In this document: positions 1-61,603 of the stretch, piece by piece
How positions within the stretch are numbered: position 1 is the first letter of the stretch
How the letters are laid out: each line of letters starts with the position of its first letter
Assembly: GCA_044892505.1 (NCBI GenBank)
Contig: CM097882.1
Location: 427,490,001-427,554,000 of the forward strand
Direction: 5' to 3'
Length of the DNA stretch: 64,000 bases
Origin: Schmidtea nova
Taxonomy: Eukaryota
The notes under the pieces: model-generated
What the model was told of the DNA's origin: nothing
The model's input: only the letters and a program-made list of their open reading frames with translations
Databases searched by the model: none
Translations under genes and position numbers: made by a program

Positions 1-3000
1 CATCGACCACAGTTCAACCAACTACCACAACTCCAATCACAACTTCCACCCAACAAACAACAGTCACTCCAATCTCCACTACGCCATCTGCTACAACTAC
101 CAATCCAACAACGACAGTTCAATCAACTACGACAACTCCAATCACAACTTCCATCCAACAAACAACAGTCACTCCAATCTCCACTACGCCATCTGCTACA
201 ACTACCACTCCAACAACGACAGTTCAATCAACTACGACAACTCCAATCACAACTTCCATCCAACAAACAACAGTCACTCCAATCTCCACTACGTCATTTG
301 CTACAACTACCTCTCCATCGACCACAGTTCAACCAACTACCACAACTCCAATCACAACTTCCACCCAACAAACAACAGTCACTCCAATCTCCACTACGCC
401 ATCTGATACAACTACCACTCCAACAACGACAGTTCAATCAACTACCACAACTCCAATCACAACTTCCACCCAACAAACAACAGTCACTCCAATCTCCACA
501 ACGCCATCTGCTACAACTACCACTCCAACAACGACAGTTCAACCAACTACCACAACTCCAATCACAACTTCCACCCAACAAACAACAGTCACTCCAATCT
601 CCACTACGCCATCTGCCACAACTACCACTCCAACAACGACAGTTCAATCAACTACCACAACTCCAATCACTACTTCCACCCAACAAACAACAGTCACTCC
701 AATCTCCACAACGCCATCTGCTACAACTACCACTCCAACAACGACAGTTCAACCAACTACGACAACTCCAATCACAACTTCCACCCAACAAACAACAGTC
801 ACTCCAATCTCCACTACGCCATCTGATACAACTACCACTCCAACAACGACAGTTCAATCAACTACCACAACTCCAATCACAACTTCCACCCAACAAACAA
901 CAGTCACACCAATCTCCACAACGCCATATGCTACAACTACCACTCCAACAACGACAGTTCAACCAACTACCACAACTCCAATCACAACTTCCACCCAACA
1001 AACAACAGTCACTCCAATCTCCACTACGCCATCTGCCACAACTACCACTCCAACAACGACAGTTCAATCAACTACCACAACTCCAATCACTACTTCCACC
1101 CAACAAACAACAGTCACTCCAATCTCCACAACGCCATCTGCTACAACTACCACTCCAACAACGACAGTTCAACCAACTACGACAACTCCAATCACAACTT
1201 CCACCCAACAAACAACAGTCACTCCAATCTCCACTACGCCATCTGCCACAACTACCACTCCAACAACGACAGTTCAATCAACTACCACAACTCCAATCAC
1301 TACTTCCACCCAACAAACAACAGTCACTCCAATCTCCACAACGCCATCTGCTACAACTACCACTCCAACAACGACAGTTCAACCAACTACGACAACTCCA
1401 ATCACAACTTCCACCCAACAAACAACAGTCACTCCAATCTCCACTATGCCATCTGATACAACTACCACTCCAACAACGACAGTTCAATCAACTACCACAA
1501 CTCCAATCACAACTTCCACCCAACAAACAACAGTCACTCCAATCTCCACTACGTCATCTGCCACAACTACCACTCCAACAACGACAGTTCAATCAACTAC
1601 CACAACTCCAATCACAACTTCCACCCAACAAACAACAGTCACTCCAATCTCCACTACGTCATCTGCCACAACTACCACTCCAACAACGACAGTTCAACCA
1701 ACTACCACAACTCCAATCACAACTTCCACCCAACAAACAACCGTCACTCCAATCTCCACAACGCCATCTGCTACAACTACCACTCCAACAACGACAGTTC
1801 AATCAACTACGACAACTCCAATCACAACTTCCATCCAACAAACAACAGTCACTCCAATCTCCACTACGTCATTTGCTACAACTACCTCTCCATCGACCAC
1901 AGTTCAACCAACTACCACAACTCCAATCACAACTTCCACCCAACAAACAACAGTCACTCCAATCTCCACTACGCCATCTGCTACAACTACCAATCCAACA
2001 ACGACAGTTCAATCAACTACGACAACTCCAATCACAACTTCCATCCAACAAACAACAGTCACTCCAATCTCCACTACGCCATCTGCTACAACTACCACTC
2101 CAACAACGACAGTTCAATCAACTACGACAACTCCAATCACAACTTCCATCCAACAAACAACAGTCACTCCAATCTCCACTACGCCATCCGCTACAACTAC
2201 CACTCCAACAACGACAGTTCAATCAACTACAACAACTCCAATCACAACTGCCACCCAACAAACAACAGTCACTCCAATCAGCACAACGTCATTTGCTACA
2301 ACTACCTCTCCATCGACCACAGTTCAACCAACTACCACAACTCCAATCACAACTTCCACTCAACAAACAACAGTCACTCCAATCTCCACTACGCCATCTG
2401 ATACAACTACCACTCCAACAACGACAGTTCAATCAACGACCACAACTCCAATCACAACTTCCACCCAACAAACAACAGTCACTCCAATCTCCACAACGCC
2501 ATCTGCTACAACTACCACTCCAACAACGACAGTTCAACCAACTACGACAACTCCAATCACAACTTCCACCCAACAAACAACAGTCACTCCAATCTCCACT
2601 ACGCCATCTGCCACAACTACCACTCCAACAACGACAGTTCAATCAACTACCACAACTCCAATCACTACTTCCACCCAACAAACAACAGTCACTCCAATCT
2701 CCACAACGCCATCTGCTACAACTACCACTCCAACAACGACAGTTCAATCAACTACGACAACTCCAATCACAACTTCCACCCAACAAACAACAGTCACTCC
2801 AATCTCCACTACGCCATCTGCCACAACTACCACTCCAACAACGACAGTTCAATCAACTACCACAACTCCAATCACTAATTCCACCCAACAAACAACAGTC
2901 ACTCCAATCTCCACAACGCCATCTGCTACAACTACCACTCCAACAACGACAGTTCAACCAACTACGACAACTCCAATCACAACTTCCACCCAACAAACAA

Positions 3001-6000
3001 CAGTCACTCCAATCTCCACAACGCCATCTGCTACAACTACCACTCCAACAACGACAGTTCAACCAACTACGACAACTCCAATCACAACTTCCACCCAACA
3101 AACAACAGTCACTCCAATCTCCACTACGCCATCTGCTACAACTACCACTCCAACAACGACAGTTCAACCAACTACGACAACTCCAATCACAACTTCCACC
3201 CAACAAACAACAGTCACTCCAATCACCACAATGTCATCTGCTACAACTACCTCTCCATCGACCACAGTTCAACCAACTACCACAACTCCAATCACAACTT
3301 CCACACAACAAACAACAATCACTCCAATCACCACAACGTCATCTGCTACAACTACCACTCCAACAACGACAGTTCAATCAACTACGACAACTCCAATCAC
3401 AACTTCCATCCAACAAACAACAGTCACTCCAATCTCCACTACGCCATTTGCTACAACTACCACTCCAACAACGACAGTTCAATCAACTACAACAACTCCA
3501 ATCACAACTTCCACCCAACAAACAACAGTCACTCCAATCACCACAACGTCATCTGCTACAACTACCTCTCCATCGACCACAGTTCAACCAACTACCACAA
3601 CTCCAATCACAACTTCCACCCAACAAACAACAGTCACTCCAATCTCCACTACGCCATCTGCTACAACTACCACTCCAACAACGACAGTTCAATCAACTAC
3701 CACAACTCCAATCACAACTTCCATCCAACAAACAACAGTCACTCCAATCTCCACAACGCCATATGCTACAACTACCACTCCAACAACGACAGTTCAACCA
3801 ACTACCACAACTCCAATCACAACTTCCACCCAACAAACAACAGTCACTCCAATCTCCACTACGCCATCTGCCACAACTACCACTCCAACAACGACAGTTC
3901 AATCAACTACCACAACTCCAATCACTACTTCCACCCAACAAACAACAGTCACTCCAATCTCCACAACGCCATCTGCTACAACTACCACTCCAACAACGAC
4001 AGTTCAACCAACTACGACAACTCCAATCACAACTTCCACCCAACAAACAACAGTCACTCTAATCTCCACTACGCCATCTGCCACAACTACCACTCCAACA
4101 ACGACAGTTCAATCAACTACCACAACTCCAATCACTACTTCCACCCAACAAACAACAGTCACTCCAATCTCCACAACGCCATCTGCTACAACTACCACTC
4201 CAACAACGACAGTTCAACCAACTACGACAACTCCAATCACAACTTCCACCCAACAAACAACAGTCACTCCAATCTCCACTACGCCATCTGATACAACTAC
4301 CACTCCAACAACGACAGTTCAATCAACTACCACAACTCCAATCACAACTTCCACCCAACAAACAACAGTCACTCCAATCTCCACTACGTCATCTGCCACA
4401 ACTACCACTCCAACAACGACAGTTCAATCAACTACCACAACTCCAATCACAACTTCCACCCAACAAACAACAGTCACTCCAATCTCCACTACGTCATTTG
4501 CTACAACTACCTCTCCATCGACCACAGTTCAACCAACTACCACAACTCCAATCACAACTTCCACCCAACAAACAACAGTCACTCCAATCTCCACTACGCC
4601 ATCTGCTACAACTACCAATCCAACAACGACAGTTCAATCAACTACGACAACTCCAATCACAACTTCCATCCAACAAACAACAGTCACTCCAATCTCCACT
4701 ACGCCATCTGCTACAACTACCACTCCAACAACGACAGTTCAATCAACTACGACAACTCCAATCACAACTTCCATCCAACAAACAACAGTCACTCCAATCT
4801 CCACTACGCCATCCGCTACAACTACCACTCCAACAACGACAGTTCAATCAACTACAACAACTCCAATCACAACTTCCACCCAACAAACAACAGTCACTCC
4901 AATCAGCACAACGTCATTTGCTACAACTACCTCTCCATCGACAACAGTTCAACCAACTACCACAACTCCAATCACAACTTCCACCCAACAAACAACAGTC
5001 ACTCCAATCTCCACTACGCCATCTGATACAACTACCACTCCAACAACGACAGTTCAACCAACTACGACAACTCCAATCACAACTTCCACCCAACAAACAA
5101 CAGTCACTCCAATCTCCACTACGCCATCTGCCACAACTACCACTCCAACAACGACAGTTCAATCAACTACCACAACTCCAATCACTACTTCCACCCAACA
5201 AACAACAGTCACTCCAATCTCCACAACGCCATCTGCTACAACTACCACTCCAACAACGACAGTTCAATCAACTACGACAACTCCAATCACAACTTCCACC
5301 CAACAAACAACAGTCACTCCAATCTCCACTACGCCATCTGCCACAACTACCACTCCAACAACGACAGTTCAATCAACTACCACAACTCCAATCACTAATT
5401 CCACCCAACAAACAACAGTCACTCCAATCTCCACAACGCCATCTGCTACAACTACCACTCCAACAACGACAGTTCAACCAACTACGACAACTCCAATCAC
5501 AACTTCCACCCAACAAACAACAGTCACTCCAATCTCCACAACGCCATCTGCTACAACTACCACTCCAACAACGACAGTTCAACCAACTACGACAACTCCA
5601 ATCACAACTTCCACCCAACAAACAACAGTCACTCCAATCTCCACTACGCCATCTGCTACAACTACCACTCCAACAACGACAGTTCAACCAACTACAACAA
5701 CTCCAATCACAACTTCCACCCAACAAACAACAGTCACTCCAATCAGCACAACGTCATCTGCTACAACTACCTCTCCATCGACCACAGTTCAACCAACTAC
5801 CACAACTCTAATCACAACTTCCACCCAACAAACAACAGTCACTCCAATCTCCACTACGCCATCTGCTACAACTACCACTCCAACAACGACAGTTCAACCA
5901 ACTACCACAACTCCAATCACAACTTCCACCCAACAAACAACAGTCACTCCAATCATCACAACATCAATTGATACAACTACCACTCCATCGACCACAGTTC

Positions 6001-6015
6001 AATCAACTACCACAC
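1..6015 (+). repeat. 105-bp coding minisatellite array 1 (at least 57 units)
   Basis: 105-bp period; shadow ORFs recur every 210 bp. Variant blocks recur at 2,520-2,625 bp offsets. Confidence 0.95.
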
Positions 6016-6093
6016 CATTATCCTCATCATTTGGCCTTCTTTCTTCATTGCCTTCTACCACTCTGTCTTTCCCGCAGTCAACTGCATTAACAG
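1..6093 (+). CDS. Mucin PTS exon 1 (5'-partial), Thr/Ser/Pro-rich tandem-repeat domain
   Basis: Open Thr-rich frame from position 3 (includes ORF 1446..6146) of 35-aa repeats TPTTTVQSTTTTPITTSTQQTTVTPISTTPSATTT. Ends ...TTA ACA G|gttata, a phase-1 donor at 6094. Confidence 0.9.
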
Positions 6094-10470: not shown

Positions 10471-10681
10471 AAATCGTGACGGCCAAGCCAGCAGTGTCAG
10501 GGGAATACGAGAGTAAAGTGGGCATGAACTGCACATATACATCAGAGGTATACAATGACAATTATAAAGACAGAAATAGCAAAGAATATAAAGAGTTCAC
10601 AAATAGAATGTTTATAAGCATGAGAGATAGTCTTTTGCAGAGGTTGTTGAGGCTGATAGAAATCATATTCAATTCTATTGA
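10471..10681 (+). CDS. SEA domain 1, exon a
   Basis: Acceptor ttccctaaag|AA continues the phase-1 G from 6093 (GAA=E). Reads EIVTAKPAVSGEYESKVGMNCTYTSEVYNDNYKDRNSKEYKEFTNRMFISMRDSLLQRLLRLIEIIFNSI, with the SEA-like Y.D..S.EY..F pattern. Donor GA|gtaaag, phase 2. Confidence 0.8.
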
Positions 10682-10731
10682 GTAAAGATTTTATTCTTTA
10701 TATATTTATTCTACTTTCCCAATATTAACAG

Positions 10732-10862
10732 TCGTGGCAGCGTGATTGCGGATATGCAATTCGTTATGGCGTCGAATTCTTCGATGACTGGATCCAATTT
10801 GTCGGCCATAGTAATGTCAGCAGCAGTTGATGCTTCAAATAACTCTATTATTGTCAATAACT
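10732..10862 (+). CDS. SEA domain 1, exon b (GSVI motif)
   Basis: After a 50-nt intron, acceptor ttaacag|T completes GAT. Reads DRGSVIADMQFVMASNSSMTGSNLSAIVMSAAVDASNNSIIVNN. Donor T|gttagt, phase 1. Confidence 0.8.
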
Positions 10863-10912
10863 GTTAGTTAATTAATTAAATAATATAATCGTGTTTAACA
10901 TTTTACCTTTAG

Positions 10913-10948
10913 TTACGGTCCTTCAATCACCAATAATTGTGGAATACA
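10913..10948 (+). CDS. SEA domain 1, exon c (36-nt linker)
   Basis: After a 50-nt intron, acceptor ctttag|TT. Reads FTVLQSPIIVEY. Donor A|gtatga (phase 1) joins in frame to cag|CT at 16846. Confidence 0.7.
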
Positions 10949-12436: not shown

Positions 12437-14345
12437 GCACAATTTGAAAAGATTGTTAGTTTTCGTAAGAATGGCAAATTACCACCTTTAAAAGATGAAA
12501 CAATATTAATATCTCTACTTCATGAATTAATTTTAAATAACCATATAGATAAGGATATTGTTAATTCACTTTGGCCTCGGGGATCCCAACCTGCTAAATT
12601 ATATGGTCTTCCAAACGTACACAAAGATAATTTACCTATGAGACCTGTATCGTCAATGATTCAAACTTCTTAATATAAGGTTGCGAAGTTTTTAGATAGT
12701 TTGTTGAAACCCTTGATTAAGACTGAATATGAATGTAAAGATAGCTTTGAGTTTGCCTCTTTTATAGTAAATTTAAATAAGAGTATAGATGATGACTTTA
12801 TAGTTTCGTTTGATGTGGTTAGCCTTTTTACAAATGTTCCTTTAATAGAAACGATTGATATTTGTTGAGATTTATGGAGTGTTAACACTTCACTTCATAA
12901 TATTATTGATGTTGTTGCTTTTCGTAAACCTTTGACATTTGCTACTTCTAATGTTCATTTTATCTTTGATAATCAATGGTATAAGCAAATTGATGGCGTT
13001 GCCATGGGCTCACATTTAGCTCCTACACTGGCATCCATTTTTATGTCAAGTTTAGAAAATAAATTTATAAATTGTAGTGTGAATAAACCCTTAGTATATA
13101 CACGTTATGTTGATGACATTTTTCTTGTATTTAAGAATAAAGAACATGTTGAGCCTTTTTTGTATTATATGAGTGATTTGCATAGAAATATTAAATTTAC
13201 TTTTGAAGAAGAAATTAATTCTAAAATATCATTTCTTGATTTGTTGATTGAAAAGAAAGAGAAACATTTTGAAACTGAAAGTTATAGGAAAAGAACAGAT
13301 ACTGGTTTGTAAACATCACCGGAAAGCTTTTGTGATTTTAAATATAGAAGAAATATGATAAAGGGATTGGTTTGTCGTTCTTGGACATTGCCGTCAACTT
13401 ATTGTAAATAGTTTATAAATAGTTTATTAAATTACTTTATTTACTACAGAATAATGGATATTCAAAATGTTTCTTGCAACGAATGGGTAGTGAAACTGTT
13501 GATAAGTAAATTCATAAGTGTAATGTGATTGATGACAAAATTTCGCCTGGTGTTGAATCGTTTAATTACCTTCATAGTGCTCCTTAGATTGAAACAGGTG
13601 ATGTTGTTATAGGAATGAGTGATGATGGTGTTGATTGTAGTAATAATAATGAAATAAATAAAAGTATCTTGAATGATTGCATTGGTTCTGTTATAGTTTT
13701 ACGGTTTTCTAAGGGATTTGTAAATTTAAAAAAATCTATTATAAATTATATTGGAAATTTTAATGTTAAAATAATTTCTGAATCTTGCAAAGTTCGGGAC
13801 ATGTTCAGTAATAAATCTGTGACGCCATTTGGTCTGTGTTCTGGTCTCGTATATCGTTTTACTTGTAATGGGTGTAATGCCACATACATTGGAGAGACTG
13901 TCCATCATCTCTGTACACGGGTTCAAGAACATGCCAGAAAGAGCGGAAAGAGTAACATTATTGAGCATAATAAGACTTGCAAGAAGAGCATTGGTATTTC
14001 TAATTTTAAAATACTTTCTAAGGGTTTTAAAAATTATTATGAGCTTGTGAATTGTGAGGCTTTGATGATAAAATCATTTAATCTAAAAATAAACATACAA
14101 AATGCAATATATACATGCATTTTGAGAGTGTTTAATTAATTTTACTAGGGTAAATTAAAAGTTCAATTGGATTATGCACATGTAATTATGTAATCACTTT
14201 TAAGCGTATAAAAAAGATCAATTTTTATTTTTTGAGATTGTGGAAAGCCTGATGATGACAGCTAAGCTGTTGAAATATATTGCATTAATATATTTAAAAA
14301 AATGGTGTTCTCTTATTTATATGAATAAATTGCCATTTTTATATA
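12437..14345 (+). mobile_element. Penelope-like element family 1, 5'-truncated (RT, GIY-YIG endonuclease, pLTR)
   Basis: RT motifs YGLPNVHK..PMRP, DVVSLFTNVP, QIDGVAMGSHLAP and YTRYVDDIF. Endonuclease motif VYRFTCNGCNATYIGETVHHLCTRVQEH...EALMIK. Multiple stops. Confidence 0.9.
14240..14300 (+). ncRNA. Candidate hammerhead-ribozyme-like motif in a PLE pLTR
   Basis: CTGATGA-t-GACAGC(TAA)GCTGTT-GAA-ATATATT(GCATT)AATATAT. The core boxes and stems II and III are present. Stem I is not convincingly paired and there is an extra T after the first box. Confidence 0.45.
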
Positions 14346-16845: not shown

Positions 16846-19800
16846 CTACAAATCCAATCACAACTTCCACCCAACAAACAACAGTCACTCCAATCAGCAC
16901 AACGTCATCTGCTACAACTACCACTCCAACAACAACAGTTCAATCAAATACCACAACTCCAATCACAACTTCCACTCAACAAACAACATTCACTCCAATC
17001 ATCACAACATCAATTGATACAACTACCATTCCATCAACGACAGTTCAATCAACTACCACAACTCCAATCACAACTTCCACACAACAAACAACATTCACTC
17101 CAATCACCACAACGTCATCTGCTACAACTACCACTCCAACAACGACAGTTCAATCAACTACCACCACTCCAATCACAACTTCCACTCAACAAACAACATT
17201 CACTCCAATCATCACAACATCAACTGATACAACTACCATTCCATCAACGACAGTTCAATCAACTACCACCACTCCAATCACAACTTCCACCCAACAAACA
17301 ACATTCACTCCAATCACCACAACGTCATCTGCTACAACTACCACTCCAACAACGACAGTTCAATCAACTACCACCACTCCAATCACAACTTCCACCCAAC
17401 AAACAACATTCACTCCAATCACCACAACGTCATCTGCTACAACTACCACTCCAACAACGACAGTTCAATCAACTACCACCACTCCAATCACAACTTCCAC
17501 CCAACAAACAACAGTCACTCCAATCACCACAACATCATCTGCTATAACTACCACTCCATCAACGACAGTTCAATCAACTTCCACAATTCCAATCACAACT
17601 TCCAGCCAACAAACAACTGTCACACCTATCACCACAACGTCATCTGCTACAACTACTACCCCAACAACAACAGTTCAATCAACTACAACAACTCCAATCA
17701 CAACTTCCACCCAACAAACAACAGTCACTCCAATCACCACAACGCCATCTGCTTCAACTACCACTCCAACAACGACAGTTCAATCTGCTACCACAACTCC
17801 AATCACAACTTCCACCCTACAGACAACAGCCACTCCAATCACCACAACGCCATCTGCTACAACTACCACTCCAACAACGACAGTTCAATCAACTACCACC
17901 ACTCCAATCACAACTTCCACCCAAAAGACAACAGTCACTCCAATCACCACAACGTCATCTGCTACAACTACTACTCCAACAACGACAAATATCTCAACTA
18001 CCACAACTCAAATCACAACTTCCACCCAACAAACAACAGTCACTCCAATCATCACAACATCAATTGATACAACTACCATTCCATCAACGACAGTTCAATC
18101 AATTACCACCACTCCAATCACAACTTCCACCCAACAAACAACAGTCACTCCAATAACCACAACGTCATCTGCTATAACTACCACTCCATCAACGACAGTT
18201 CAATCAACTTCCACAATTCCAATCACAACTTCCACCCAACAAACAACAGTCACTCCGATCACCACAACGTCATCTGCTACAACTACCTCTCCAACAACAA
18301 CAGTTCAATCAAATACCACAACTCCAATCACAACTTCCACACAACAAACAACATTCACTCCAATCACCACAACGTCATCTGCTACAACTACCACTCCAAC
18401 AACGACAGTTCAATCAACTACAACAACTCCAATCACAACTTCCACCCAACAAACAACAGTCACTCCAATCAGCACAACGTCATCTGCTACAACTACCACT
18501 CCAACAACAACAGTTCAATCAAATACCACAACTCCAATCACAACTTCCACTCAACAAACAACATTCACTCCAATCAGCACAACGTCATCTGCTACAACTA
18601 CCACTCCAACAACGACAGTTCAATCTGCTACCACAACTCCAATCACAACTTCCACCCTACAGACAACAGCCACTCCAATCACCACAACGCCATCTGCTAC
18701 AACTACCACTCCAACAACGACAGTTCAATCAACTACCACCACTCCAATCACAACTTCCACCCAAAAGACAACAGTCACTCCAATCACCACAACGTCATCT
18801 GCTACAACTACTACTCCAACAACGACAAATATCTCAACTACCACAACTCAAATCACAACTTCCACCCAACAAACAACAGTCACTCCAATCATCACAACAT
18901 CAATTGATACAACTACCATTCCATCAACGACAGTTCAATCAATTACCACCACTCCAATCACAACTTCCACCCAACAAACAACAGTCACTCCAATAACCAC
19001 AACGTCATCTGCTATAACTACCACTCCATCAACGACAGTTCAATCAACTTCCACAATTCCAATCACAACTTCCACCCAACAAACAACAGTCACTCCAATC
19101 ACCACACCGCCATCTGCTACAACTACCCCGCCAACAACGACAGTTCAATCAACTACTTCAATTCCAATCACAACTTCCAGCCAACAAACAACAGTCACTC
19201 CCATCACCACAACGCCATCTGCTACAACTACCACTCCAACAACGACAGTTCAATCAACTACCACCACTCCAATCACAACTTCCACCCAACAAACAACATT
19301 CACTCCAATCACCACAACGTCATCTGCTACAACTACCACTCCAACAACGACAGTTCAATCAACTACCACCACTCCAATCACAACTTCCACCCAACAAACA
19401 ACAGTCACTCTAATCACCACAACATCATCTGCTATAACTACCACTCCATCAACGACAGTTCAATCAACTTCCACAATTCCAATCACAACTTCCAGCCAAC
19501 AAACAACTGTCACACCTATCACCACAACGTCATCTGCTACAACTACTACCCCAACAACAACAGTTCAATCAACTACCACAACTCCAATCACAACTTCCAC
19601 CCAACAAACAACAGTCACTCCAATCACCACAACGCCATCTGCTTCAACTACCACTCCAACAACGACAGTTCAATCAACTACAACAACTCCAATCACAACT
19701 TCCACCCAACAAACAACAGTCACTCCAATCACCACAACATCATCTGCTATAACTACCACTCCATCAACGACAGTTCAATCAACTTCCACAATTCCAATCA

Positions 19801-28190: not shown

Positions 28191-28269
28191 CCATTATCCT
28201 CATCATTTGGCCTTCTTTCTTCATTGCCTTCTACCACTCTGTCTTTCCCGCAGTCAACTGCATTAACAG
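16846..28269 (+). CDS. Mucin PTS exon 2 (11,424 nt, about 3,808 aa)
   Basis: Acceptor ttttatttcag|CT ACA AAT CCA ATC. Length divisible by 3 (phase 1-1). No stop noticed in the Thr frame while reading. Same 3' end and donor (ACA G|gttata) as exon 1. Missing from the ORF track because it has no in-frame start codon. Confidence 0.85.
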
Positions 28270-32652: not shown

Positions 32653-32863
32653 AAATCGTGACGGGCAAACCAGCAGTGTCAGGGGAATACGAGAGTAAAG
32701 TGGGCATGAACTGCAGATATACATCAGAGGTATACAATGACAATTATAAAGACAGAAATAGCAAAGAATATAAAGAGTTCACAAATAGAATGTTTATAAG
32801 CATGAGAGATAGTCTTTTGCAGAGGTTGTTGAGGCTGATAGAAATCATATTCAATTCTATTGA
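32653..32863 (+). CDS. SEA domain 2, exon a
   Basis: Near-identical paralog of 10471-10681 (211 nt) with the same splice sites. Matches ORF 32586..32867. Confidence 0.8.
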
Positions 32864-32913: not shown

Positions 32914-33044
32914 TCGTGGCAGCGTGATTGCGGATATGCAAATCGTTATGGCGTCGAATTCTTCGATGACTGGATCCAATTTCTCGGCCATAGTAATGTC
33001 AGCAGCAGTTGATGCTTCAAATAACTCTATTATTGTCAATAACT
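32914..33044 (+). CDS. SEA domain 2, exon b (GSVI motif)
   Basis: Paralog of 10732-10862. Reads DRGSVIADMQIVMASNSSMTGSNFSAIV... Donor gttaat. Confidence 0.8.
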
Positions 33045-33094: not shown

Positions 33095-33130
33095 TTACGG
33101 TCCTTCAATCACCAATAATTGTGGAATACA
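33095..33130 (+). CDS. SEA domain 2, exon c
   Basis: Identical to 10913-10948. The phase-1 donor gtatga joins to tag|CT at 44413. Confidence 0.7.
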
Positions 33131-40592: not shown

Positions 40593-40593
<1 letters not shown>

Positions 40594-44412: not shown

Positions 44413-47400
44413 CTACGAATCCAATCACAACTTCCAACCAACAAACAACAGTCACTCCAATCATCACAACATCAATTGATACAACTACGACTCCAACAAC
44501 GACAGTTCAATCAACTACGACATCTCCAATCACAACTTCTAACCAACAAACAACAGTCACTCCAATCACCACAACATCAATTGATACAACTACGACTCCA
44601 ACAACGACAATTCAATCAACTACGACATCTCCAATCACAACTTCCAACCAACAAACAACAGTCACTCCAATCACCACAACATCAATTGATACAACTACGA
44701 CTCCAACAACGACAATTCAATCAACTACGACAACTCCATTCACAACTTATAACCAACAAACAACAGTATCTCCAATTACCACAACGTCATCTGTTACATC
44801 TACCACTCCAACAACGACAGTTCAATCAACTATTACAACTCCAATCACAACTTCTAACCAACAAACAACAGTCACTCCAATCACCACAACATCAATTGAT
44901 ACAACTACGACTCCAACAACGACAGTTCAATCAACTACAACAACTCCATTCACAACTTCTAACCAACAAACAACAGTCACTCCAATTACCACAACGTCAT
45001 CTGCTACAACTACCACTCCAACGACAGTTCAATCAACTACCACAACTCAAATCACAACTTCCAAGCAAGAAACAACTGTCACTCCGATCACCACAACGTC
45101 ATCAGCTACAACTACCACTCCAACAACGACAATTCAATCAACTACCACAACTCCAATCACAACTTCTAACCAACAAACAACAGTCACTCCGAATACTACA
45201 ACGTCATCTGCTACAACTACCACTCCAACGACAGTTCAATCAACTACCACAACTCCTATCACAACTTCCACCCAACAAACAACCGTCACTCCAATCACCA
45301 CAACATCAATTGATACAACTTCCATTCCAACAACGACAGTTCAATCAACTACGACAACTCCAATTACAATTTCTAACCAACAAACAACAGTCACTCCAAT
45401 CACCACAACGTCATCTGCTACAACTACCACTCCAACAACGACAGTTCAATCCACTACGACAACTCCAATCACAACTTCCAACCAACAAACAACAGTCACT
45501 CCAATCACCACAACGTCATCTGCTACAACTACCACGCCAACAACGACAGTTCAATCAACTACCACAACTCCTATCACAACTTCCACCCAACAAACAACAG
45601 TCACTCCAATCATCACAACTTCAATTGATAGAACTACCATTCCAACAACGACAGTTCAATCAACTACGACAACTCCAATTACAATTTCTAACCAACAAAC
45701 AACAGTCACACCAATCACCACAACGTCATCTGCTACAACTACCACTCCAACAACGACAGTTCAATCAACTACTACAACTCCAATCACAACTTCTAACCAA
45801 CAAACAACAGTCACTCCAATCATCACAACTTCAATTGATACAACTACCATTCCAACAACGACAGTTCAATCAACTACGACAAATCCAATAACAATTTCTA
45901 ACCAACAAACAACAGTCACTCCAATCACCACAACGTCATCTGCTACAACTACCACTCCAACAACGACAGTTCAATCCACTACGACAACTCCAATCACAAC
46001 TTCCAACCAACAAACAACAGTCACTCCAATCACCACAACGTCATCTGCTACAACTACCACGCCAACAACGACAGTTCAATCAACTACCACAACTCCTATC
46101 ACAACTTCCACCCAACAAACAACAGTCACTCCAATCATCACAACTTCAATTGATACAACTACCATTCCAACAACGACAGTTCAATCAACTACGACAACTC
46201 CAATTACAATTTCTAACCAACAAACAACAGTCACTCCAATCACCACAACGTCATCTGCTACAACTACCACTCCAACAACGACAGTTCAATCCACTACGAC
46301 AACTCCAATCACAACTTCCAACCAACAAACAACAGTCACTCCAATCACCACAACGTCATCTGCTACAACTACCACGCCAACAACGACAGTTCAATCAACT
46401 ACCACAACTCCTATCACAACTTCCACCCAACAAACAACAGTCACTCCAATCATCACAACTTCAATTGATACAACTACCATTCCAACAACGACAGTTCAAT
46501 CAACTACGACAACTCCAATTACAATTTCTAACCAACAAACAACAGTCACTCCAATCACCACAACGTCATCTGCTACAACTACCACTCCAACAACGACAGT
46601 TCAATCCACTACGACAACTCCAATCACAACTTCCAACCAACAAACAACAGTCACTCCAATCACCACAACGTCATCTGCTACAACTACCACGCCAACAACG
46701 ACAGTTCAATCAACTACCACAACTCCTATCACAACTTCCACCCAACAAACAACAGTCACTCCAATCATCACAACTTCAATTGATACAACTACCATTCCAA
46801 CAACGACAGTTCAATCAACTACGACAACTCCAATTACAATTTCTAACCAACAAACATCAGTCACTCCGATTACCACAACGTCATCTGCTACAACTACCAC
46901 TCCAACAACGACAGTTCAATCCACTACGACAACTCCAATCACAACTTCCAACCAACAAACAACAGTCACTCCAATCACCACAACGTCATCTGCTACAACT
47001 ACCACGCCAACAACGACAGTTCAATCAACTACTACAACTCCAATCACAACTTCTAACCAACAAACAACAGTCACTCCAATCATCACAACGTCATCTGCTA
47101 CAACTACCACGCCAACAACGACAGTTCAATCCACTACGACAACTCCAATCACAACTTCCACCCAACAAACAACAGTCAATCCAATCACCACAACGTCATC
47201 TGCTACAACTACCACTCCAACGACAGTTCAATCAACTACCACAACTCCAATCACAACTTCCAAGCAAGAAACAACTGTCACTCCAATCACCACAACGTCA
47301 TCAGCTACAAATACCACTCCAACAACGACAGTTCAATCAACTACCACCACTCCAATCACAACTTCCACCCAACAAACAACAGTCACTCCAATCATCACAA

Positions 47401-50400
47401 CTTCAATTGATACAACTACCATTCCAACAACGACAGTTCAATCAACTACGACAACTCCAATCACAATTTCTAACCAACAAACAACAGTCACTCCAATCAC
47501 CACAACGTCATCTGCTACAACTACAACTCCAACAACGACAGTTCAATCAACTACCACCACTCCAATCACAACTTCCAAACAACAAACAACAGTCACTCCA
47601 ATCATCACAACTTCAATTGATACAACTACCATTCCAACAACGACAGTTCAATCAACTACGACAACTCCAATTACAATTTCTAACCAACAAACAACAGTCA
47701 CTCCAATCACCACAACGTCATCTGCTACAACTACCACGCCAACAACGACAGTTCAATCCACTACGACAACTCCAATCACAACTTCTAACCAACAAACAAC
47801 AGTCACTCCGATTACTACAACGTCATCAGCTACAACTACCACTCCAACAACGACAATTCAATCAACTACCACAACTCCAATCACAACTTCTAACCAACAA
47901 ACATCAGTCACTCCGATTACCACAACGTCATCAGCTACAACTACCACTCCAACAACGACAGTTCAATCCACTACGACAACTCCAATCACAACTTCCAACC
48001 AACAAACAACAGTCACTCCAATCATCACAACATCAATTGATACAACTTCCATTCCAACAACGACAGTTCAATCAACTACGACAACTCCAATCACAACTTC
48101 CAACCAACAAACAACAGTCACTCCAATCATCACAACATCAATTGATACAACTACCATTCCAACAACGACAGTTCAATCAACTACTACAACTCCAATCACA
48201 ACTTCTAACCAACAAACATCAGTCACTCCGATTACCACAACGTCATCAGCTACAACTACCACTCCAACAACGACAGTTCAATCCACTACGACAACTCCAA
48301 TCACAACTTCCAACCAACAAACAACAGTCACTCCAATCATCACAACATCAATTGATATAACTTCCATTCCAACAACGACAGTTCAATCAACTACGACAAC
48401 TCCAATTACAATTTCTAACCAACAAACAACAGTCACTCCAATCACCACAACGTCATCTGCTACAACTACCACGCCAACAACGACAGTTCAATCAACTACC
48501 ACAACTCCTATCACAACTTCCACCCAACAAACAACAGTCACTCCAATCATCACAACTTCAATTGATACAACTACCATTCCAACAACGACAGTTCAATCAA
48601 CTACTACAACTCCAATCACAACTTCTAACCAACAAACATCAGTCACTCCGATTACCACAACGTCATCAGCTACAACAACCACTCCAACAACGACAGTTCA
48701 ATCAACTACCACCACTCCAATCACAACTTCCACCCAACAAACAACAGTCACTCCAATCATCACAACTTCAATTGATACAACTTCCATTCCAACAACGACA
48801 GTTCAATCAACTACGACAACTCCAATCACAATTTCTAACCAACAAACAACAGTCACTCCAATCACCACAACGTCATCTGTTACAACTACCACGCCAACAA
48901 CGACAGTTCAATCAACTACCACAACTCCTATCACAACTTCCACCCAACAAACAACAGTCACTCCAATCACCACAACGTCATCTGCTACAACTACCACTCC
49001 AACGACAGTTCAATCAACTACCACAACTCCAATCACAACTTCCAAGCAAGAAACAACTGTCACTCCGATCACCACAACGCCATCTGCTACAACTACCACT
49101 CCAACGACAGTTCAATCAACTACCACAACTCCTATCACAACTTCCACCCAACAAACAACCGTCACTCCAATCACCACAACATCAATTGATACAACTTCCA
49201 TTCCAACAACGACAGTTCAATCAACTACGACAACTCCAATTACAATTTCTAACCAACAAACAACAGTCACTCCAATCACCACAACGTCATCTGCTACAAC
49301 TACCACTCCAACAACGACAGTTCAATCCACTACGACAACTCCAATCACAACTTCCAACCAACAAACAACAGTCACTCCAATCACCACAACGTCATCTGCT
49401 ACAACTACCACGCCAACAACGACAGTTCAATCAACTACCACAACTCCTATCACAACTTCCACCCAACAAACAACAGTCACTCCAATCATCACAACTTCAA
49501 TTGATAGAACTACCATTCCAACAACGACAGTTCAATCAACTACGACAACTCCAATTACAATTTCTAACCAACAAACAACAGTCACACCAATCACCACAAC
49601 GTCATCTGCTACAACTACCACTCCAACAACGACAGTTCAATCAACTACTACAACTCCAATCACAACTTCTAACCAACAAACAACAGTCACTCCAATCATC
49701 ACAACTTCAATTGATACAACTACCATTCCAACAACGACAGTTCAATCAACTACGACAAATCCAATAACAATTTCTAACCAACAAACAACAGTCACTCCAA
49801 TCACCACAACGTCATCTGCTACAACTACCACTCCAACAACGACAGTTCAATCCACTACGACAACTCCAATCACAACTTCCAACCAACAAACAACAGTCAC
49901 TCCAATCACCACAACGTCATCTGCTACAACTACCACGACAACAACGACAGTTCAATCAACTACCACAACTCCTATCACAACTTCCACCCAACAAACAACA
50001 GTCACTCCAATCATCACAACTTCAATTGATACAACTACCATTCCAACAACGACAGTTCAATCAACTACGACAACTCCAATTACAATTTCTAACCAACAAA
50101 CAACAGTCACTCCAATCACCACAACGTCATCTGCTACAACTACCACTCCAACAACGACAGTTCAATCCACTACGACAACTCCAATCACAACTTCCAACCA
50201 ACAAACAACAGTCACTCCAATCACCACAACGTCATCTGCTACAACTACCACGCCAACAACGACAGTTCAATCAACTACCACAACTCCTATCACAACTTCC
50301 ACCCAACAAACAACAGTCACTCCAATCATCACAACTTCAATTGATACAACTACCATTCCAACAACGACAGTTCAATCAACTACGACAACTCCAATTACAA

Positions 50401-53400
50401 TTTCTAACCAACAAACAACAGTCACTCCAATCACCACAACGTCATCTGCTACAACTACCACTCCAACAACGACAGTTCAATCCACTACGACAACTCCAAT
50501 CACAACTTCCAACCAACAAACAACAGTCACTCCAATCACCACAACGTCATCTGCTACAACTACCACGCCAACAACGACAGTTCAATCAACTACCACAACT
50601 CCTATCACAACTTCCACCCAACAAACAACAGTCACTCCAATCATCACAACTTCAATTGATACAACTACCATTCCAACAACGACAGTTCAATCAACTACGA
50701 CAACTCCAATTACAATTTCTAACCAACAAACATCAGTCACTCCGATTACCACAACGTCATCTGCTACAACTACCACTCCAACAACGACAGTTCAATCCAC
50801 TACGACAACTCCAATCACAACTTCCAACCAACAAACAACAGTCACTCCAATCACCACAACGTCATCTGCTACAACTACCACGCCAACAACGACAGTTCAA
50901 TCAACTACTACAACTCCAATCACAACTTCTAACCAACAAACAACAGTCACTCCAATCATCACAACGTCATCTGCTACAACTACCACGCCAACAACGACAG
51001 TTCAATCCACTACGACAACTCCAATCACAACTTCCACCCAACAAACAACAGTCAATCCAATCACCACAACGTCATCTGCTACAACTACCACTCCAACGAC
51101 AGTTCAATCAACTACCACAACTCCAATCACAACTTCCAAGCAAGAAACAACTGTCACTCCAATCACCACAACGTCATCAGCTACAAATACCACTCCAACA
51201 ACGACAGTTCAATCAACTACCACCACTCCAATCACAACTTCCACCCAACAAACAACAGTCACTCCAATCATCACAACTTCAATTGATACAACTACCATTC
51301 CAACAACGACAGTTCAATCAACTACGACAACTCCAATCACAATTTCTAACCAACAAACAACAGTCACTCCAATCACCACAACGTCATCTGCTACAACTAC
51401 AACTCCAACAACGACAGTTCAATCAACTACCACCACTCCAATCACAACTTCCAAACAACAAACAACAGTCACTCCAATCATCACAACTTCAATTGATACA
51501 ACTACCATTCCAACAACGACAGTTCAATCAACTACGACAACTCCAATTACAATTTCTAACCAACAAACAACAGTCACTCCAATCACCACAACGTCATCTG
51601 CTACAACTACCACGCCAACAACGACAGTTCAATCCACTACGACAACTCCAATCACAACTTCTAACCAACAAACAACAGTCACTCCGATTACTACAACGTC
51701 ATCAGCTACAACTACCACTCCAACAACGACAATTCAATCAACTACCACAACTCCAATCACAACTTCTAACCAACAAACATCAGTCACTCCGATTACCACA
51801 ACGTCATCAGCTACAACTACCACTCCAACAACGACAGTTCAATCCACTACGACAACTCCAATCACAACTTCCAACCAACAAACAACAGTCACTCCAATCA
51901 TCACAACATCAATTGATACAACTTCCATTCCAACAACGACAGTTCAATCAACTACGACAACTCCAATCACAACTTCCAACCAACAAACAACAGTCACTCC
52001 AATCATCACAACATCAATTGATACAACTACCATTCCAACAACGACAGTTCAATCAACTACTACAACTCCAATCACAACTTTCAACCAACAAACAACAGTC
52101 ACTCCAATCACCACAACATCAATTGATACAACTTCCATTCCAACAACGACAGTTCAATCAACTACGACAACTCCAATCACAACTTCCAACCAACAAACAA
52201 CAGTCACTCCAATCATCACAACATCAATTGATACAACTACCATTCCAACAACGACAGTTCAATCAACTACTACAACTCCAATCACAACTTCTAACCAACA
52301 AACATCAGTCACTCCGATTACCACAACGTCATCAGCTACAACTACCACTCCAACAACGACAGTTCAATCCACTACGACAACTCCAATCACAACTTCCAAC
52401 CAACAAACAACAGTCACTCCAATCATCACAACATCAATTGATATAACTTCCATTCCAACAACGACAGTTCAATCAACTACGACAACTCCAATTACAATTT
52501 CTAACCAACAAACAACAGTCACTCCAATCACCACAACGTCATCTGCTACAACTACCACGCCAACAACGACAGTTCAATCAACTACCACAACTCCTATCAC
52601 AACTTCCACCCAACAAACAACAGTCACTCCAATCATCACAACTTCAATTGATACAACTACCATTCCAACAACGACAGTTCAATCAACTACTACAACTCCA
52701 ATCACAACTTCTAACCAACAAACATCAGTCACTCCGATTACCACAACGTCATCAGCTACAACAACCACTCCAACAACGACAGTTCAATCAACTACCACCA
52801 CTCCAATCACAACTTCCACCCAACAAACAACAGTCACTCCAATCATCACAACTTCAATTGATACAACTTCCATTCCAACAACGACAGTTCAATCAACTAC
52901 GACAACTCCAATCACAATTTCTAACCAACAAACAACAGTCACTCCAATCACCACAACGTCATCTGTTACAACTACCACGCCAACAACGACAGTTCAATCC
53001 ACTACCACAACTCCTATCACAACTTCCACCCAACAAACAACAGTCACTCCAATCACCACAACGTCATCTGCTACAACTACCACTCCAACGACAGTTCAAT
53101 CAACTACCACAACTCCAATCACAACTTCCAAGCAAGAAACAACTGTCACTCCGATCACCACAACGTCATCTGCTACAACTACCACTCCAACAACGACAAT
53201 TCCATCAACTACGACAACTCCAATCACAATTTCTAACCAACAAACAACAGTCACTCCAATCACCACAACGTCATCAGCTACAACTACCACTCCAACAACG
53301 ACAATTCAATCAACTACCACAACTCCAATCACAACTTTCAACCAACAAACAACAGTCACTCCAATCACCACAACATCAATTGATACAACTTCCATTCCAA

Positions 53401-55550
53401 CAACGACAGTTCAATCAACTACGACAACTCCAATCACAACTTCCAACCAACAAACAACAGTCACTCCAATCATCACAACATCAATTGATACAACTACCAT
53501 TCCAACAACGACAGTTCAATCAACTACTACAACTCCAATCACAACTTCTAACCAACAAACATCAGTCACTCCGATTACCACAACGTCATCAGCTACAACT
53601 ACCACTCCAACAACGACAGTTCAATCCACTACGACAACTCCAATCACAACTTCCAACCAACAAACAACAGTCACTCCAATCATCACAACATCAATTGATA
53701 CAACTACCATTCCAACAACGACAGTTCAATCAACTACTACAACTCCAATCACAACTTCTAACCAACAAACATCAGTCACTCCGAATACCACAACGTCATC
53801 TGCTACAACTACCACTCCAACGTCAGTTCAATCAACTACCACAACTCCAATCACAACTTTCAACCAACAAACAACAGTCACTCCAATCAAAAGAACATCA
53901 ATTGATATAACTTCCATTCCAACAACGACAGTTCAATCAACTACGACAACTCCAATTACAATTTCTAACCAACAAACAACAGTCACTCCAATCACCACAA
54001 CGTCATCTGCTACAACTACCACTCCAACAACGACAGTTCAATCCACTACGACAACTCCAATCACAACTTCCAACCAACAAACAACAGTCACTCCAATCAT
54101 CACAACATCAATTGATACAACTACCATTCCAACAACGACAGTTCAATCAACTACTACAACTCCAATCACAACTTCTAACCAACAAACATCAGTCACTCCA
54201 ATCATCACAACATCAATTGATACAACTACCATTCGAACAACGACAGTTCAATCAACTACCACAACTCCTATCACAACTTCCACCCAACAAACAACAGTCA
54301 CTCCAATCACCACAACGTCATCTGCTACAACTACCACTCCAACGACAGTTCAATCAACTACCACAACTCCAATCACAACTTCCAAGCAAGAAACAACTGT
54401 CACTCCGATCACCACAACGTCATCTGCTACAACTACCACTCCAACAACGACAATTCCATCAACTTCGACAACTCCAATCACAATTTCTAACCAACAAACA
54501 ACAGTCACTCCAATCACCACAACGTCATCAGCTACAACTACCACTCCAACAACGACAGTTCAATCAACTACCACCACTCCAATCACAACTTCCACCCAAC
54601 AAACAACAGTCACTCCAATCATCACAACTTCAATTGATACAACTACCATTCCAACAACGACAGTTCAATCAACTACGACAACTCCAATCACAATTTCTAA
54701 CCAACAAACAACAGTCACTCCAATCACCACAACGTCATCTGCTACAACTACTACTCCAACAACGACAGTTCAATCAACTACCACCACTCCTATCACAACT
54801 TCCACCCAACAAACAACAGTCACTCCAATCATCACAACTTCAATTCATACAACTACCATTCCAACAACGACAGTTCAATCAACTACGACAACTCCAATTA
54901 CAATTTCTAACCAACAAACAACAGTCACTCCAATCATCACAACATCAATTGATACAACTACCCTTCCAACAACGACAGTTCAATCAACTACTACAACTCC
55001 AATCACAATTTCTAACCAACAAACAACAGTCACTCCAATCACCACAACGTCATCTGCTACAACTACTACTCCAACAACGACAGTTCAATCAACTACCACC
55101 ACTCCTATCACAACTTCCACCCAACAAACAACAGTCACTCCAATCATCACAACTTCAATTCATACAACTACCATTCCAACAACGACAGTTCAATCAACTA
55201 CGACAACTCCAATTACAATTTCTAACCAACAAACAACAGTCACTCCAATCACCACAACGTCATCTGCTACAACTACCACTCCAACAACGACAGTTCAATC
55301 AACTACCACAACTCCAATCACAACTTCCAACCAACAAACAACAGTCACTCCAATCATCACAACATCAATTGATACAACTACCCTTCCAACAACGACAGTT
55401 CAATCAACTACTACAACTCCAATCACAACTTCTAACCAACAAACATCAGTCACTCCGATTACCACAACGTCATCAGCTACAACTACCACTCCAACAACGA
55501 CAGTTCAATCAACTACGACAACTCCAATCACAACTTCCACCCAACAAACG
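44413..55550 (+). repeat. 105/102-bp coding minisatellite array 3 (about 106 units) with a 3,876-bp higher-order duplication
   Basis: Shadow ORFs at 46150/50026 and ORF ends at 45891/49767 are both offset by 3,876 bp (37 units, three of them 102 bp). Confidence 0.95.
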
Positions 55551-55641
55551 ACTCTCTTTTCTCAATCATCCTCATCATTTGGTCCTTTTTCTTCATTACC
55601 TCTTTCCAATCTGTCTTCTCCACCGTCAAATGTAATAACAG
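44413..55641 (+). CDS. Mucin PTS exon 3 (11,229 nt, about 3,743 aa)
   Basis: Acceptor ttttattttag|CT ACG AAT CCA ATC. Repeat variants include SNQQ and SKQE and some 102-bp units. Ends ...AAT GTA ATA ACA G|gttaat (phase 1). Length divisible by 3. Confidence 0.85.
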
Positions 55642-61181: not shown

Positions 61182-61413
61182 GTCAAAGCACGGCTCCAAT
61201 ACAACCTTTTTCTGATTTTCCGGCTCGAGTTGGAGAATTTGAATATATTCTAAACATGACAACCAGATTTATTAATGAGACCTTTGATTCGACTTATTCT
61301 GATCTTAATTCCGCCTCGTCTATAGCTTTTATGAGTAATATCTGTCAAAAATTACGGAAACCATTTCTACTTTTAAATATAAGATTGATTCGATGTTTAC
61401 CAAACAATATAAG
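61182..61413 (+). CDS. SEA domain 3 (diverged), exon a
   Basis: Acceptor ttaattcag|GT (phase 1). Reads GQSTAPIQPFSDFPARVGEFEYILNMTTRFINETFDSTYSDLNSASSIAFMSNICQKLRKPFLLLNIRLIRCLPNNI, which aligns without gaps to SEA1 (PAVSGEYE..M...E.Y...Y.D.NS...F...R.....RLI). Donor AG|gttaat, phase 2. Confidence 0.75.
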
Positions 61414-61469
61414 GTTAATTTTAATTTTACTATACTGTATAAATTTTATTTTAACTATTTTCCCGCTAG

Positions 61470-61603
61470 ATCCGGAAGTGTTATTATCGATATGGTATTG
61501 GACATTGCATCAAACATGTCAAATATAAACGTCACTTTGACATCAGATTTTCCTAATTTGTATTTTTCACAAAATAATCTCGAGACAATTTCAGTTATTC
61601 AAT
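61470..61603 (+). CDS. SEA domain 3, exon b (GSVI motif)
   Basis: After a 56-nt intron, acceptor cccgctag|A. Reads RSGSVIIDMVLDIASNMSNINVTLTSDFPNLYFSQNNLETISVIQ. Donor T|gtaagt, phase 1. The intron sits at the same position and phase as in SEA1 and SEA2. Confidence 0.8.

Follow-up and report, generated by a model that had tools for sequence, protein, structure and literature searches.

Gene model and exon structure

The stretch of DNA analysed here (the window, 64,000 nucleotides) carries eleven exons on the forward strand, all bordered by GT-AG, with a pyrimidine-rich tract at every acceptor. Rebuilt and joined, these exons amount to 29,866 nt, or 9,955 codons without a stop, in the module order PTS-SEA-PTS-SEA-PTS-SEA. 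A single G-S-V-I is present in each small module (protein positions 2103, 6037 and 9913). The first-pass annotation had proposed such a chain (eleven exons in one frame, about 29.9 kb and about 9,950 aa, in this order, with G-S-V-I kept in all three SEA domains and PTS rods of ~3,800 aa), and the rebuilt model reproduces it throughout. The five junctions that it listed (6093/10471, 10948/16846, 28269/32653, 33130/44413 and 55641/61182) are all correct and GT-AG. The model extends beyond the window at both the 5' and 3' sides.

The three large modules are G-poor blocks (positions 1–6093, 16846–28269 and 44413–55641; GC skew about −0.77), each of which is a single exon consisting of a 105-nt tandem array that encodes a Thr-rich unit of 35 aa. 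PTS exon 1 (1..6093, modelled as 3–6093) ends in phase 1 at the donor G/GTTATA; the window start truncates it, so its length of at least 2,030 aa is a minimum, with at least 58 repeat copies (57.2 as a 105-nt array). PTS exon 2 (16846..28269, 11,424 nt) contains 108 repeats (108.0 copies; 3,808 aa), and PTS exon 3 (44413..55641, 11,229 nt) about 106 (106.3 copies; 3,743 aa). Serine and threonine together make up 62–64% of these 2,030, 3,808 and 3,743 residues, and proline 9–12%, which is the long Thr/Ser/Pro-rich tandem-repeat region of a mucin. PTS1 ends in a short, non-repeat, Ser-rich 3' tail, whereas PTS3 has a Ser-rich tail of its own and some repeats of 34 aa. A higher-order periodicity of 13 units is found in PTS2 and none in PTS1.

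The PTS exons are under coding constraint, with stops and frameshifts avoided beyond chance. One and the same frame stays open through all three (2047, 3829 and 3748 codons), the remaining two frames contain 3–91 stops, and length variants among the repeats are whole codons. When the variants observed in PTS2 are placed at random, about 12 in-frame stops are expected, none is observed, and 0 of 2000 simulations were stop-free. The same randomisation of PTS1 gives about 3.5 expected stops, again against none observed, with 2.2% of simulations stop-free.

The small modules, of roughly 125 aa, are encoded by two or three small exons each and carry 4–5 N-glycosylation sequons (N-X-S/T) apiece. In SEA1, exon a (10471..10681) encodes β1, α1 and β2, starting in phase 1 and ending in phase 2; exon b (10732..10862) starts with R-G-S-V-I-A, its G-S codons lying at 10736–10741; and exon c (10913..10948), 36 nt long, encodes the last β strand and ends in phase 1. 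SEA2 consists of exon a (32653..32863), which was duplicated together with SEA1 exon a and differs from it by 3 substitutions, exon b (32914..33044; G-S codons at 32918–32923) and exon c (33095..33130), the counterpart of SEA1 exon c in the duplicated unit. SEA3 is of a divergent type, with its intron placed as in SEA1. Its exon a spans 61182..61413, and its exon b (61470..61603) starts with R-S-G-S-V-I-I (G-S codons at 61474–61479). Exon b ends in phase 1, so one more exon must come after it; none is recognisable in the last 2.4 kb of the window. Both window ends fall inside the gene; between them there is neither a signal peptide nor a transmembrane segment nor any other terminus of the gene, and no VWD or cysteine-knot exon was seen. 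A membrane anchor may be located at the true 3' end, beyond SEA3 and the window.

SEA homology of the small modules

The SEA domains of the window form part of a small SEA subfamily that has rarely been sampled, and for which a profile search of 1.84 billion representative proteins returned five relatives. SEA1 exon a aligns to residues 76–145 of one of them, P0001, with 63% identity, and the P0001 alignment runs gap-free across the predicted junctions of SEA1 exons a, b and c. P0001 consists of a Ser/Thr-rich region, a SEA domain, a transmembrane helix and a cytoplasmic tail. The contig of another relative, P0002, has an intron at the same position in another organism. SEA3 is 29–33% identical to SEA1, and G-S-V is invariant in the six known members of the subfamily, whose mutual identity is 21–63%.

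Scored exon by exon and not as a spliced domain, exon a of SEA1 and of SEA2 matches Pfam SEA (PF01390) with 15.4–15.5 bits (E=0.019–0.02; gathering cut-off 26.4 bits) as its only relevant match, and the SEA3 exons, submitted singly, match no Pfam entry. Among the relatives, P0005 scores above the cut-off (30.0 bits, E=6e-7), and P0004 (20.5 bits, E=5e-4) and P0001 (16.6 bits, E=0.009) score below it. At E=2e-14, the exon-a profile also retrieves P0003, a fish protein in which Pfam recognises 10 SEA domains, from the 1.84 billion proteins. The best PDB match of the family profile is the SEA region of ADGRF1 (E=0.33), in which G-S is aligned to G-S.

Structure prediction was run on relatives. 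The AlphaFold model of P0001 residues 72–205, a proxy 63% identical to SEA1, has a pLDDT of 74.9 and displays the β-α-β-β-α-β order of the SEA fold (E16-30, H41-61, E66-74, E77-88, H94-108 and E113-124), with G76-S77 at the β2/β3 turn between E66-74 and E77-88; only one of five P0001 models is confident. P0005, modelled as a further proxy, came out poorly (pLDDT 62), with the hairpin not formed. The best Foldseek match of the P0001 model is TMPRSS6 (TM 0.56, probability 1.00), a protease with a SEA domain; SEA domains of MUC16 are among the other high-probability matches, and none of the matches reaches E <= 0.001. These predictions lend moderate structural support to a SEA fold. Together, the Pfam match of exon a, the profile search and the P0001 model with its Foldseek matches bear out the earlier assignment of the small modules to SEA.

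Duplication of PTS-SEA units

The segment 6050..12451 (forward strand) has a second copy at 28226–34604, 95.8% identical over 6.4 kb. Identity along the two units is uneven (97.4%, 98.7% and 93.3%, then 80–87% with inversions), reaching 99.5% over the final 200 nt of PTS1 and PTS2 and 93–97% in the introns. SEA1 and SEA2 are 96% identical; four of the five nucleotide differences between them are non-synonymous, so there is no sign of purifying selection on the pair since duplication. By these identities, units 1 and 2 are recent tandem duplicates of one PTS-SEA cassette. The count of three SEA domains in the first-pass annotation therefore stands for modules, each with G-S-V-I, but not for types, of which just two are independent. 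For the same reason, the independent junctions supporting the gene model are fewer than eleven exons would suggest.

The intron after SEA1 is 5.9 kb long and that after SEA2 11.3 kb. The former, which leads to PTS2, contains the remnant of a Penelope-like retroelement (RT and GIY-YIG; 12869..14136, forward strand), which marks the spacers as ordinary introns laden with transposable elements.

The cleavage motif

SEA1 and SEA2 carry RGSVIA and SEA3 carries SGSVII, so that each displays the G-S-[V/I]-[V/I] of the autoproteolytic subtype, at a position that is the β2/β3 turn in the P0001 model. A G-S motif is necessary for SEA cleavage but not sufficient, as a strained hairpin is also needed. In matriptase, G-S-V-I-A is hydrolysed between Gly149 and Ser150 and the halves remain non-covalently attached (PMC3799725). 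SEA1 and SEA2 contain this exact pentapeptide. Because every member of the subfamily keeps G-S-V at the β2/β3 turn, the SEA domains of the window most likely self-cleave between Gly and Ser while folding, and their halves would stay non-covalently joined.

Relation to known mucins

The first-pass annotation knew of no described mucin with this layout. Alternation of SEA and PTS in one protein had, as summarised in PMC4948705, already been described in 2007 for a Xenopus mucin-like family (Lang 2007); the likeness is drawn from the description of the Xenopus proteins in that summary and holds for the gene model alone. The locus studied here lies in an AT-rich genome and carries a SEA subfamily with five database relatives.

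MUC16 has long been described as the sole mucin with multiple SEA domains (PMC1552070; PMC10687090). Like the window, it carries numerous SEA domains with O-glycosylated linkers between them, its short PT-rich linkers alternating with SEA. MUC16 starts with one giant PTS region, after which SEA domains are packed at intervals of ~156 aa, most of them without a G-S site. The SEA domains of the window are not packed in a short tandem after the PTS region but lie ~3,800 aa (3,743–3,808 aa) of PTS apart, interleaved with it, and each keeps G-S-V-I. MUC1, MUC3, MUC12, MUC13 and MUC17 have PTS followed by a SEA domain with G↓S[V/I]V, and P0001 ends as they do. In these proteins the one SEA domain is next to the membrane, whereas SEA1 and SEA2 each precede another giant PTS exon; within the window, no single SEA domain directly precedes a transmembrane segment and tail.

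Other likenesses are partial. Matriptase (ST14), which has the same G-S-V-I-A, is a type II membrane protease, and its homology is distant and confined to the domain. The long glycan rods of MUC2, MUC5AC and MUC5B are also interrupted by small folded domains (PMC1552070), but there the small domain is CysD, which does not cleave itself. The 'FLO11-like' protein of Notolabrus celidotus (XP_034533091; P0003) has ten Pfam SEA domains that alternate with PT-rich linkers, but these linkers are ~25 aa long, the G-S motif is absent, and its domains match the window SEA domains weakly (5–14 bits each; hhalign probability 53%). The interphotoreceptor matrix proteoglycans IMPG1 and IMPG2 have a SEA domain on either side of a mucin-like region, which is short and non-tandem, and they contain other domains too. 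Taken against these systems, the locus is an unusually enlarged form of an established layout, and what appears new is its scale, together with the presence of the cleavage motif at every node.

Interpretation

The window probably covers an interior part of a single, very large mucin gene in an AT-rich animal genome, composed of PTS/SEA cassettes whose SEA domains are likely to self-cleave. The gene model is assembled from symmetrical phase-1/phase-1 cassettes of two kinds. One kind is a single 11-kb exon that repeats a 35-aa Thr/Ser/Pro unit ~107 times, a putative substrate for dense O-glycosylation that would have an extended length of ~0.95 micrometre, and the other is a ~125-aa SEA domain built from two or three small exons. 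The array has expanded through tandem duplication of entire PTS-SEA cassettes, with units 1 and 2 as the product of the newest event. Indirect hints of secretory routing are that SEA domains are extracellular and that those of the window each carry 4–5 N-X-S/T sequons. If the internal SEA domains self-cleave at Gly/Ser and their halves hold together non-covalently, in the manner of MUC1 and matriptase, maturation would yield a string of glycan rods linked by non-covalent SEA joints able to part under mechanical load.

In a rival reading, the cassettes share one locus but not one mRNA. Every cassette border is phase 1/phase 1, so that skipping exons would preserve the frame too and mucins with one or two rods could be made by splicing; frame compatibility cannot separate one long mRNA from cassette-skipping isoforms. 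Besides skipping, units 1 and 2, being near-identical, might be used in a mutually exclusive way, or the units might be separate genes in tandem whose first and last exons went unrecognised. Read-through of the SEA exon c donor leads to a stop after 13–19 codons. A signal-peptide-like frame with a phase-1 donor is also found upstream of PTS2 (15208–15253) and PTS3 (42006–42081). However, this frame, the only one of its kind between the modules, belongs to an element that occurs four times, in both orientations, and is thus probably transposon sequence. Moreover, no exon resembling the transmembrane helix and tail of P0001 is present between the modules, and PTS2 and PTS3 begin at strong acceptors whose nearest in-phase upstream donors are SEA exons. 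We consider separate messages quite unlikely. An assembly artefact, in which a long-repeat or haplotype error has doubled one unit and the true gene has fewer nodes, is very unlikely. The high identity of the two units, up to the ends of PTS1 and PTS2, and the difficulty of assembling 11-kb arrays of 105-nt repeats are compatible with such an error, but the divergence between the units is uneven and ends in inversions, the introns after SEA1 and SEA2 differ almost twofold in length, PTS2 has a higher-order repeat that PTS1 lacks, and the sequence is continuous with 0 N. Even then, at least PTS-SEA-PTS-SEA would survive, as PTS3 and SEA3 are clearly distinct.

The gene could also be as modelled and its internal SEA domains neither cleave nor part, serving as folded, N-glycosylated spacers comparable to CysD or to the motif-less SEA domains of MUC16. 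The dependence of cleavage on a strained hairpin leaves room for this, and many SEA domains are uncleaved, those of the MUC16 type and of ADGRG4 being without the motif (PMC10687090). The fish relative P0003 lacks it as well. Against such spacers stand the invariance of G-S-V in six members as divergent as 21% identity, the matriptase-cleaved pentapeptide in SEA1 and SEA2, and the position of the G-S pair in the P0001 model. On this evidence, inert spacers are unlikely.

The SEA joint of membrane mucins is thought to part under force before the membrane tears, thereby protecting cells. A fuller version of the self-cleaving reading, with one polypeptide of >10,000 aa, cleavage at all internal SEA domains and outer, micrometre-long rods shed one by one under shear, is possible, if somewhat doubtful. 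If true, the mucin would act as a graded mechanical fuse, in contrast to MUC1-type mucins with their one joint near the membrane, and its micrometre-spaced joints would offer a natural test of the force-parting idea and a model for stepwise trimming of the glycocalyx. The locus also illustrates how mucins grow, with symmetrical phase-1 cassettes duplicated wholesale and one duplication still young by the 93–97% identity of its introns. The recovery of just five relatives from 1.84 billion proteins shows that giant repetitive mucin genes are poorly captured by current annotation.

Organization of the mucin locus

The window carries a real, intact and unusually large modular SEA-type mucin gene, as predicted from its sequence. 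The DNA is animal genomic, contains no N in its 64 kb, and is made up of three long G-poor blocks (GC about 0.42–0.46 and GC skew about −0.77 in the composition scan) separated by AT-rich spacers (GC 0.25–0.32). The G-poor blocks are 105-nt tandem arrays of 57.2, 108.0 and 106.3 copies, in which one common frame is open over 2047, 3829 and 3748 codons, respectively. The spacers contain transposon debris (Penelope-like RT and GIY-YIG, hAT and DUF7041) and repeated inverted elements. Rfam and tRNA scans of the window were both empty of RNA genes.

Eleven exons, each bounded by a GT donor and by an AG acceptor that follows a pyrimidine-rich stretch, were rebuilt from the sequence into a spliced chain of 29,866 nt (9,955 codons) with no stops, and all sizes and junctions proposed in the first-pass annotation proved correct. 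The joined protein consists of three arrays of Thr-rich repeats, each followed by a small module: PTS1 (exon 3–6093, residues 1–2030, its 5′ part cut off by the window start), SEA1 (residues 2031–2156), PTS2 (exon 16846–28269, residues 2157–5964), SEA2 (residues 5965–6090), PTS3 (exon 44413–55641, residues 6091–9833) and SEA3 (residues 9834–9955). G-S-V-I occurs once in every SEA module. A pseudogene was ruled out by the lack of stops and frameshifts across 29.9 kb.

The PTS rods

The PTS repeat unit is 35 residues long (consensus QQTTVTPISTTPSATTTTPTTTVQSTTTTPITTST), exists in 19–37 variant forms per block, with a few 34-residue units in PTS3, and is composed of 62–64% Ser plus Thr and 9–12% Pro. 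PTS1 and PTS2 have no in-frame stops, and the other two frames have 3–91. When the observed deviations from the repeat consensus were reshuffled randomly in 2000 runs, a procedure that is somewhat generous because some repeat variants are common to several copies, about 12 in-frame stops were expected in PTS2 and none of the 2000 simulations was stop-free; for PTS1, about 3.5 stops were expected and 2.2% of simulations were stop-free. Length variants are whole codons. The PTS arrays are under coding constraint. Synonymous changes make up 49% (PTS1) and 33% (PTS2) of the variant codons, where 31% would be expected at random; the precise residues are under weak selection, as is usual in mucin repeats.

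A word-indexed protein search with the tail of PTS2 gave no match. PTS2 also displays a higher-order repeat of 13 units (1,365 nt) over 16848–28190, with a self-identity of 0.940 at a lag of 13 units, 0.935 at 26 and 0.924 at 39, compared with about 0.905 at other lags. By the same self-identity analysis, this periodicity is absent from PTS1. Glycosylated mucins extend by 2.5 Å per residue (PMC10687090), at which PTS2 and PTS3 are predicted to span ~0.95 micrometre each.

Assignment of the small modules to the SEA family

Pfam tests on the window were run on single exons, and database relatives served as proxies for the spliced domains. SEA was the sole match for exon a of SEA1 and SEA2 (E=0.02, 15.5 bits, with a cut-off of 26.4 bits); the remaining single exons gave nothing relevant, and those of SEA3 had no SEA match. 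A profile was built from the three exon-a peptides; of 1.84 billion representative proteins, it retrieved only five, P0001–P0005. In P0001, a Ser/Thr-rich region precedes a domain with 63% identity to SEA1, after which come a transmembrane helix and a cytoplasmic tail. Two further relatives, P0004 and P0005, are shorter, P0002 corresponds to exon a alone, and the fish protein P0003 has ten SEA domains by Pfam (380 bits). Pfam SEA scores were 30.0 bits for P0005, which is above the cut-off, 20.5 for P0004 and 16.6 for P0001. Related loci were also sought in genomes and metagenomes, and the P0005 contig alone was recovered.

The best PDB match of the family profile was the SEA region of ADGRF1, which is weak (E=0.33) and places G-S on G-S. 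PDB sequence searches with P0004 and P0005 gave no match, and a word-indexed protein search with P0001 found only P0001 itself. The best AlphaFold model of P0001 residues 72–205 has a pLDDT of 74.9, with four of the five models being poor. Its secondary-structure elements follow the beta-alpha-beta-beta-alpha-beta order of SEA domains, and G76-S77 falls in the turn that separates strand 66–74 from strand 77–88. The top match of this model in a fold search was TMPRSS6 (TM 0.56, probability 1.00), a protease with an N-terminal SEA domain, for which the aligned part of the 720-residue chain is unspecified. MUC16 SEA domains were among further high-probability matches; the E-values of all matches exceeded 0.001, and unrelated ferredoxin-like folds were numerous lower in the ranking. 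The confidence of the P0005 model was too low for use. SEA3 is homologous to SEA1, with 33% identity over 90 residues (pairwise E=1e-13) and an intron in the same position, one codon before the residue preceding G-S. The combined case from single exons and proxy relatives that the small modules are SEA domains is sound.

The relatives also bear on the splice model. P0001, a contiguous database protein, aligns without gaps to SEA1 over both junctions predicted there (a/b and b/c). In the 729-nt P0002 contig, one called gene stops exactly at the end of exon a and a second starts 54 nt later, a layout indicating that another organism has the same intron. The P0005 locus has no intron at that SEA position. 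Its contig, JAYSWT010000094.1 (1,837 nt, 45% GC), is filed as ‘MAG: bacterium isolate GFS_12994’ and looks like a eukaryotic contaminant of a bacterial genome bin. In P0001 (residues 199–230), S-T-T-N-P-P-P-I-P links the SEA domain to the transmembrane helix, and the exons after SEA1 and SEA2 open with T-T-N-P-I-T-T followed by PTS (16846–16870 for the second PTS exon). This T-T-N-P opening, common to both, is a hint of a shared 5′ end between the PTS exon and the P0001 transmembrane exon. By analogy with P0001, the gene may finish beyond the window with a transmembrane helix and tail, or alternatively with a further PTS exon or a secreted terminus.

Duplication history

Segments 6050–12451 and 28226–34604 are 95.8% identical. 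Between units 1 and 2 (PTS1–SEA1 and PTS2–SEA2), identity is 97.4% in the intron before the SEA, 98.7% in the SEA exons (five changes, four of them non-synonymous), 93.3% in the 1.5 kb after the SEA and 80–87% in the remainder, which carries inversions and insertions. The last 1.4 kb upstream of PTS2 and of PTS3 are homologous (87% identity). SEA3 and the intron after PTS3 show no DNA-level relationship to the corresponding parts of units 1 and 2. These comparisons identify units 1 and 2 as a young tandem duplication of a PTS–SEA cassette, and SEA3 as an older, divergent SEA type. Given the near-identity of SEA1 and SEA2 and the divergence of SEA3, the number of independent SEA types is effectively two, not three. 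A mis-assembly in which one unit was falsely doubled into units 1 and 2 fits poorly, as the divergence of the two units is uneven, the introns downstream of SEA1 and SEA2 differ in length (5.9 vs 11.3 kb), the internal organization of PTS1 and PTS2 differs and the sequence has no gaps.

Penelope-like remnants lie at 12869–14136 in the SEA1-to-PTS2 intron (RT E=4e-9, GIY-YIG E=1e-3). The unit 2 counterpart of this segment is inverted (33238–34841, reverse).

Transcript structure

A predicted chain with all modules in one gene and one mRNA is plausible. Searched between the modules, the spacers yielded no stop and no transmembrane or tail exon like those of P0001, PTS2 and PTS3 start at strong acceptors, and the donors of the SEA exons are the nearest in-phase donors upstream. 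Both borders of every cassette are in phase 1, so that cassettes can be duplicated or skipped with the frame kept; this symmetry makes cassette skipping equally frame-compatible with one long mRNA. Separate transcript starts would draw on a signal-peptide-like frame with a phase-1 donor found upstream of PTS2 and of PTS3, but this frame, the single one found in the search for a hidden first exon between modules, belongs to an inverted repeat present in four copies in both orientations. It is thus regarded as transposon sequence and was dismissed as a first exon. The element is foldback-like, with one inverted pair per SEA-to-PTS intron (15150–15330 with 15861–16037, reverse; 41950–42082 with 43430–43607, reverse), and each forward copy has an open frame that begins MTHFLKLLL, with a phase-1 GT donor after it.

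The PTS3-to-SEA3 intron contains non-repetitive Ser/Thr-rich open stretches at 58690–59133 (e.g. 58876–59133, 85 residues) with a weak low-complexity likeness to P0001 and P0004, in the N-termini that are rich in Ser and Thr; these stretches may represent an exon that has decayed or was missed. A CA-rich, G-poor minisatellite at 62694–63507, flanked by direct repeats of ~160 nt (near 62480–62640 and 63540–63700), resembles the PTS coding strand in composition and is non-coding in its present form. It was ruled out as a fourth PTS exon, since neither of its periods (25 and 49 nt) is divisible by three and stops occur in all three frames.

The cleavage motif

G-S-V is unchanged in all six family members, whose mutual identity is only 21–63%, and this conservation argues that the predicted cleavage motif is used. 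SEA1 and SEA2 carry R-G-S-V-I-A. In matriptase, the conserved G-S-V-I-A is hydrolysed at Gly149–Ser150 and the halves remain non-covalently attached (PMC3799725); the general mucin cleavage motif is G|S[V/I]VV (PMC10687090). Separation of cleaved SEA halves needs mechanical force (PMC10556640). SEA autoproteolysis, with the stepwise shedding or force-triggered release that the first-pass annotation derived from it, would be a plausible mechanism in this mucin.

Comparison with known mucins

The suggestion of the first-pass annotation that no mucin with such a layout has been described was overstated: according to the summary of Lang et al. 2007 in PMC4948705, alternation of SEA and PTS in one protein, in a Xenopus family, had already been described. 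In MUC16, SEA domains alternate with short linkers (PMC1552070), as they do in P0003, whereas rods of ~3,800 residues lie between the nodes here. In gel-forming mucins, PTS regions alternate with CysD domains (PMC1552070). The locus differs from the described systems in its ~3,800-residue rods, an autoproteolysis motif at every node and a rare SEA subfamily. Within the window, neither the arrangement that defines the MUC1 class nor the one that defines the MUC16 class is present, and the locus is therefore assigned to neither.

The ten SEA domains of P0003 (XP_034533091, Notolabrus celidotus) are joined by PT-rich linkers of ~25 residues, form two alternating repeat subtypes and have no G-S motif. 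The protein is annotated as ‘flocculation protein FLO11-like’, which appears to be a misnomer.
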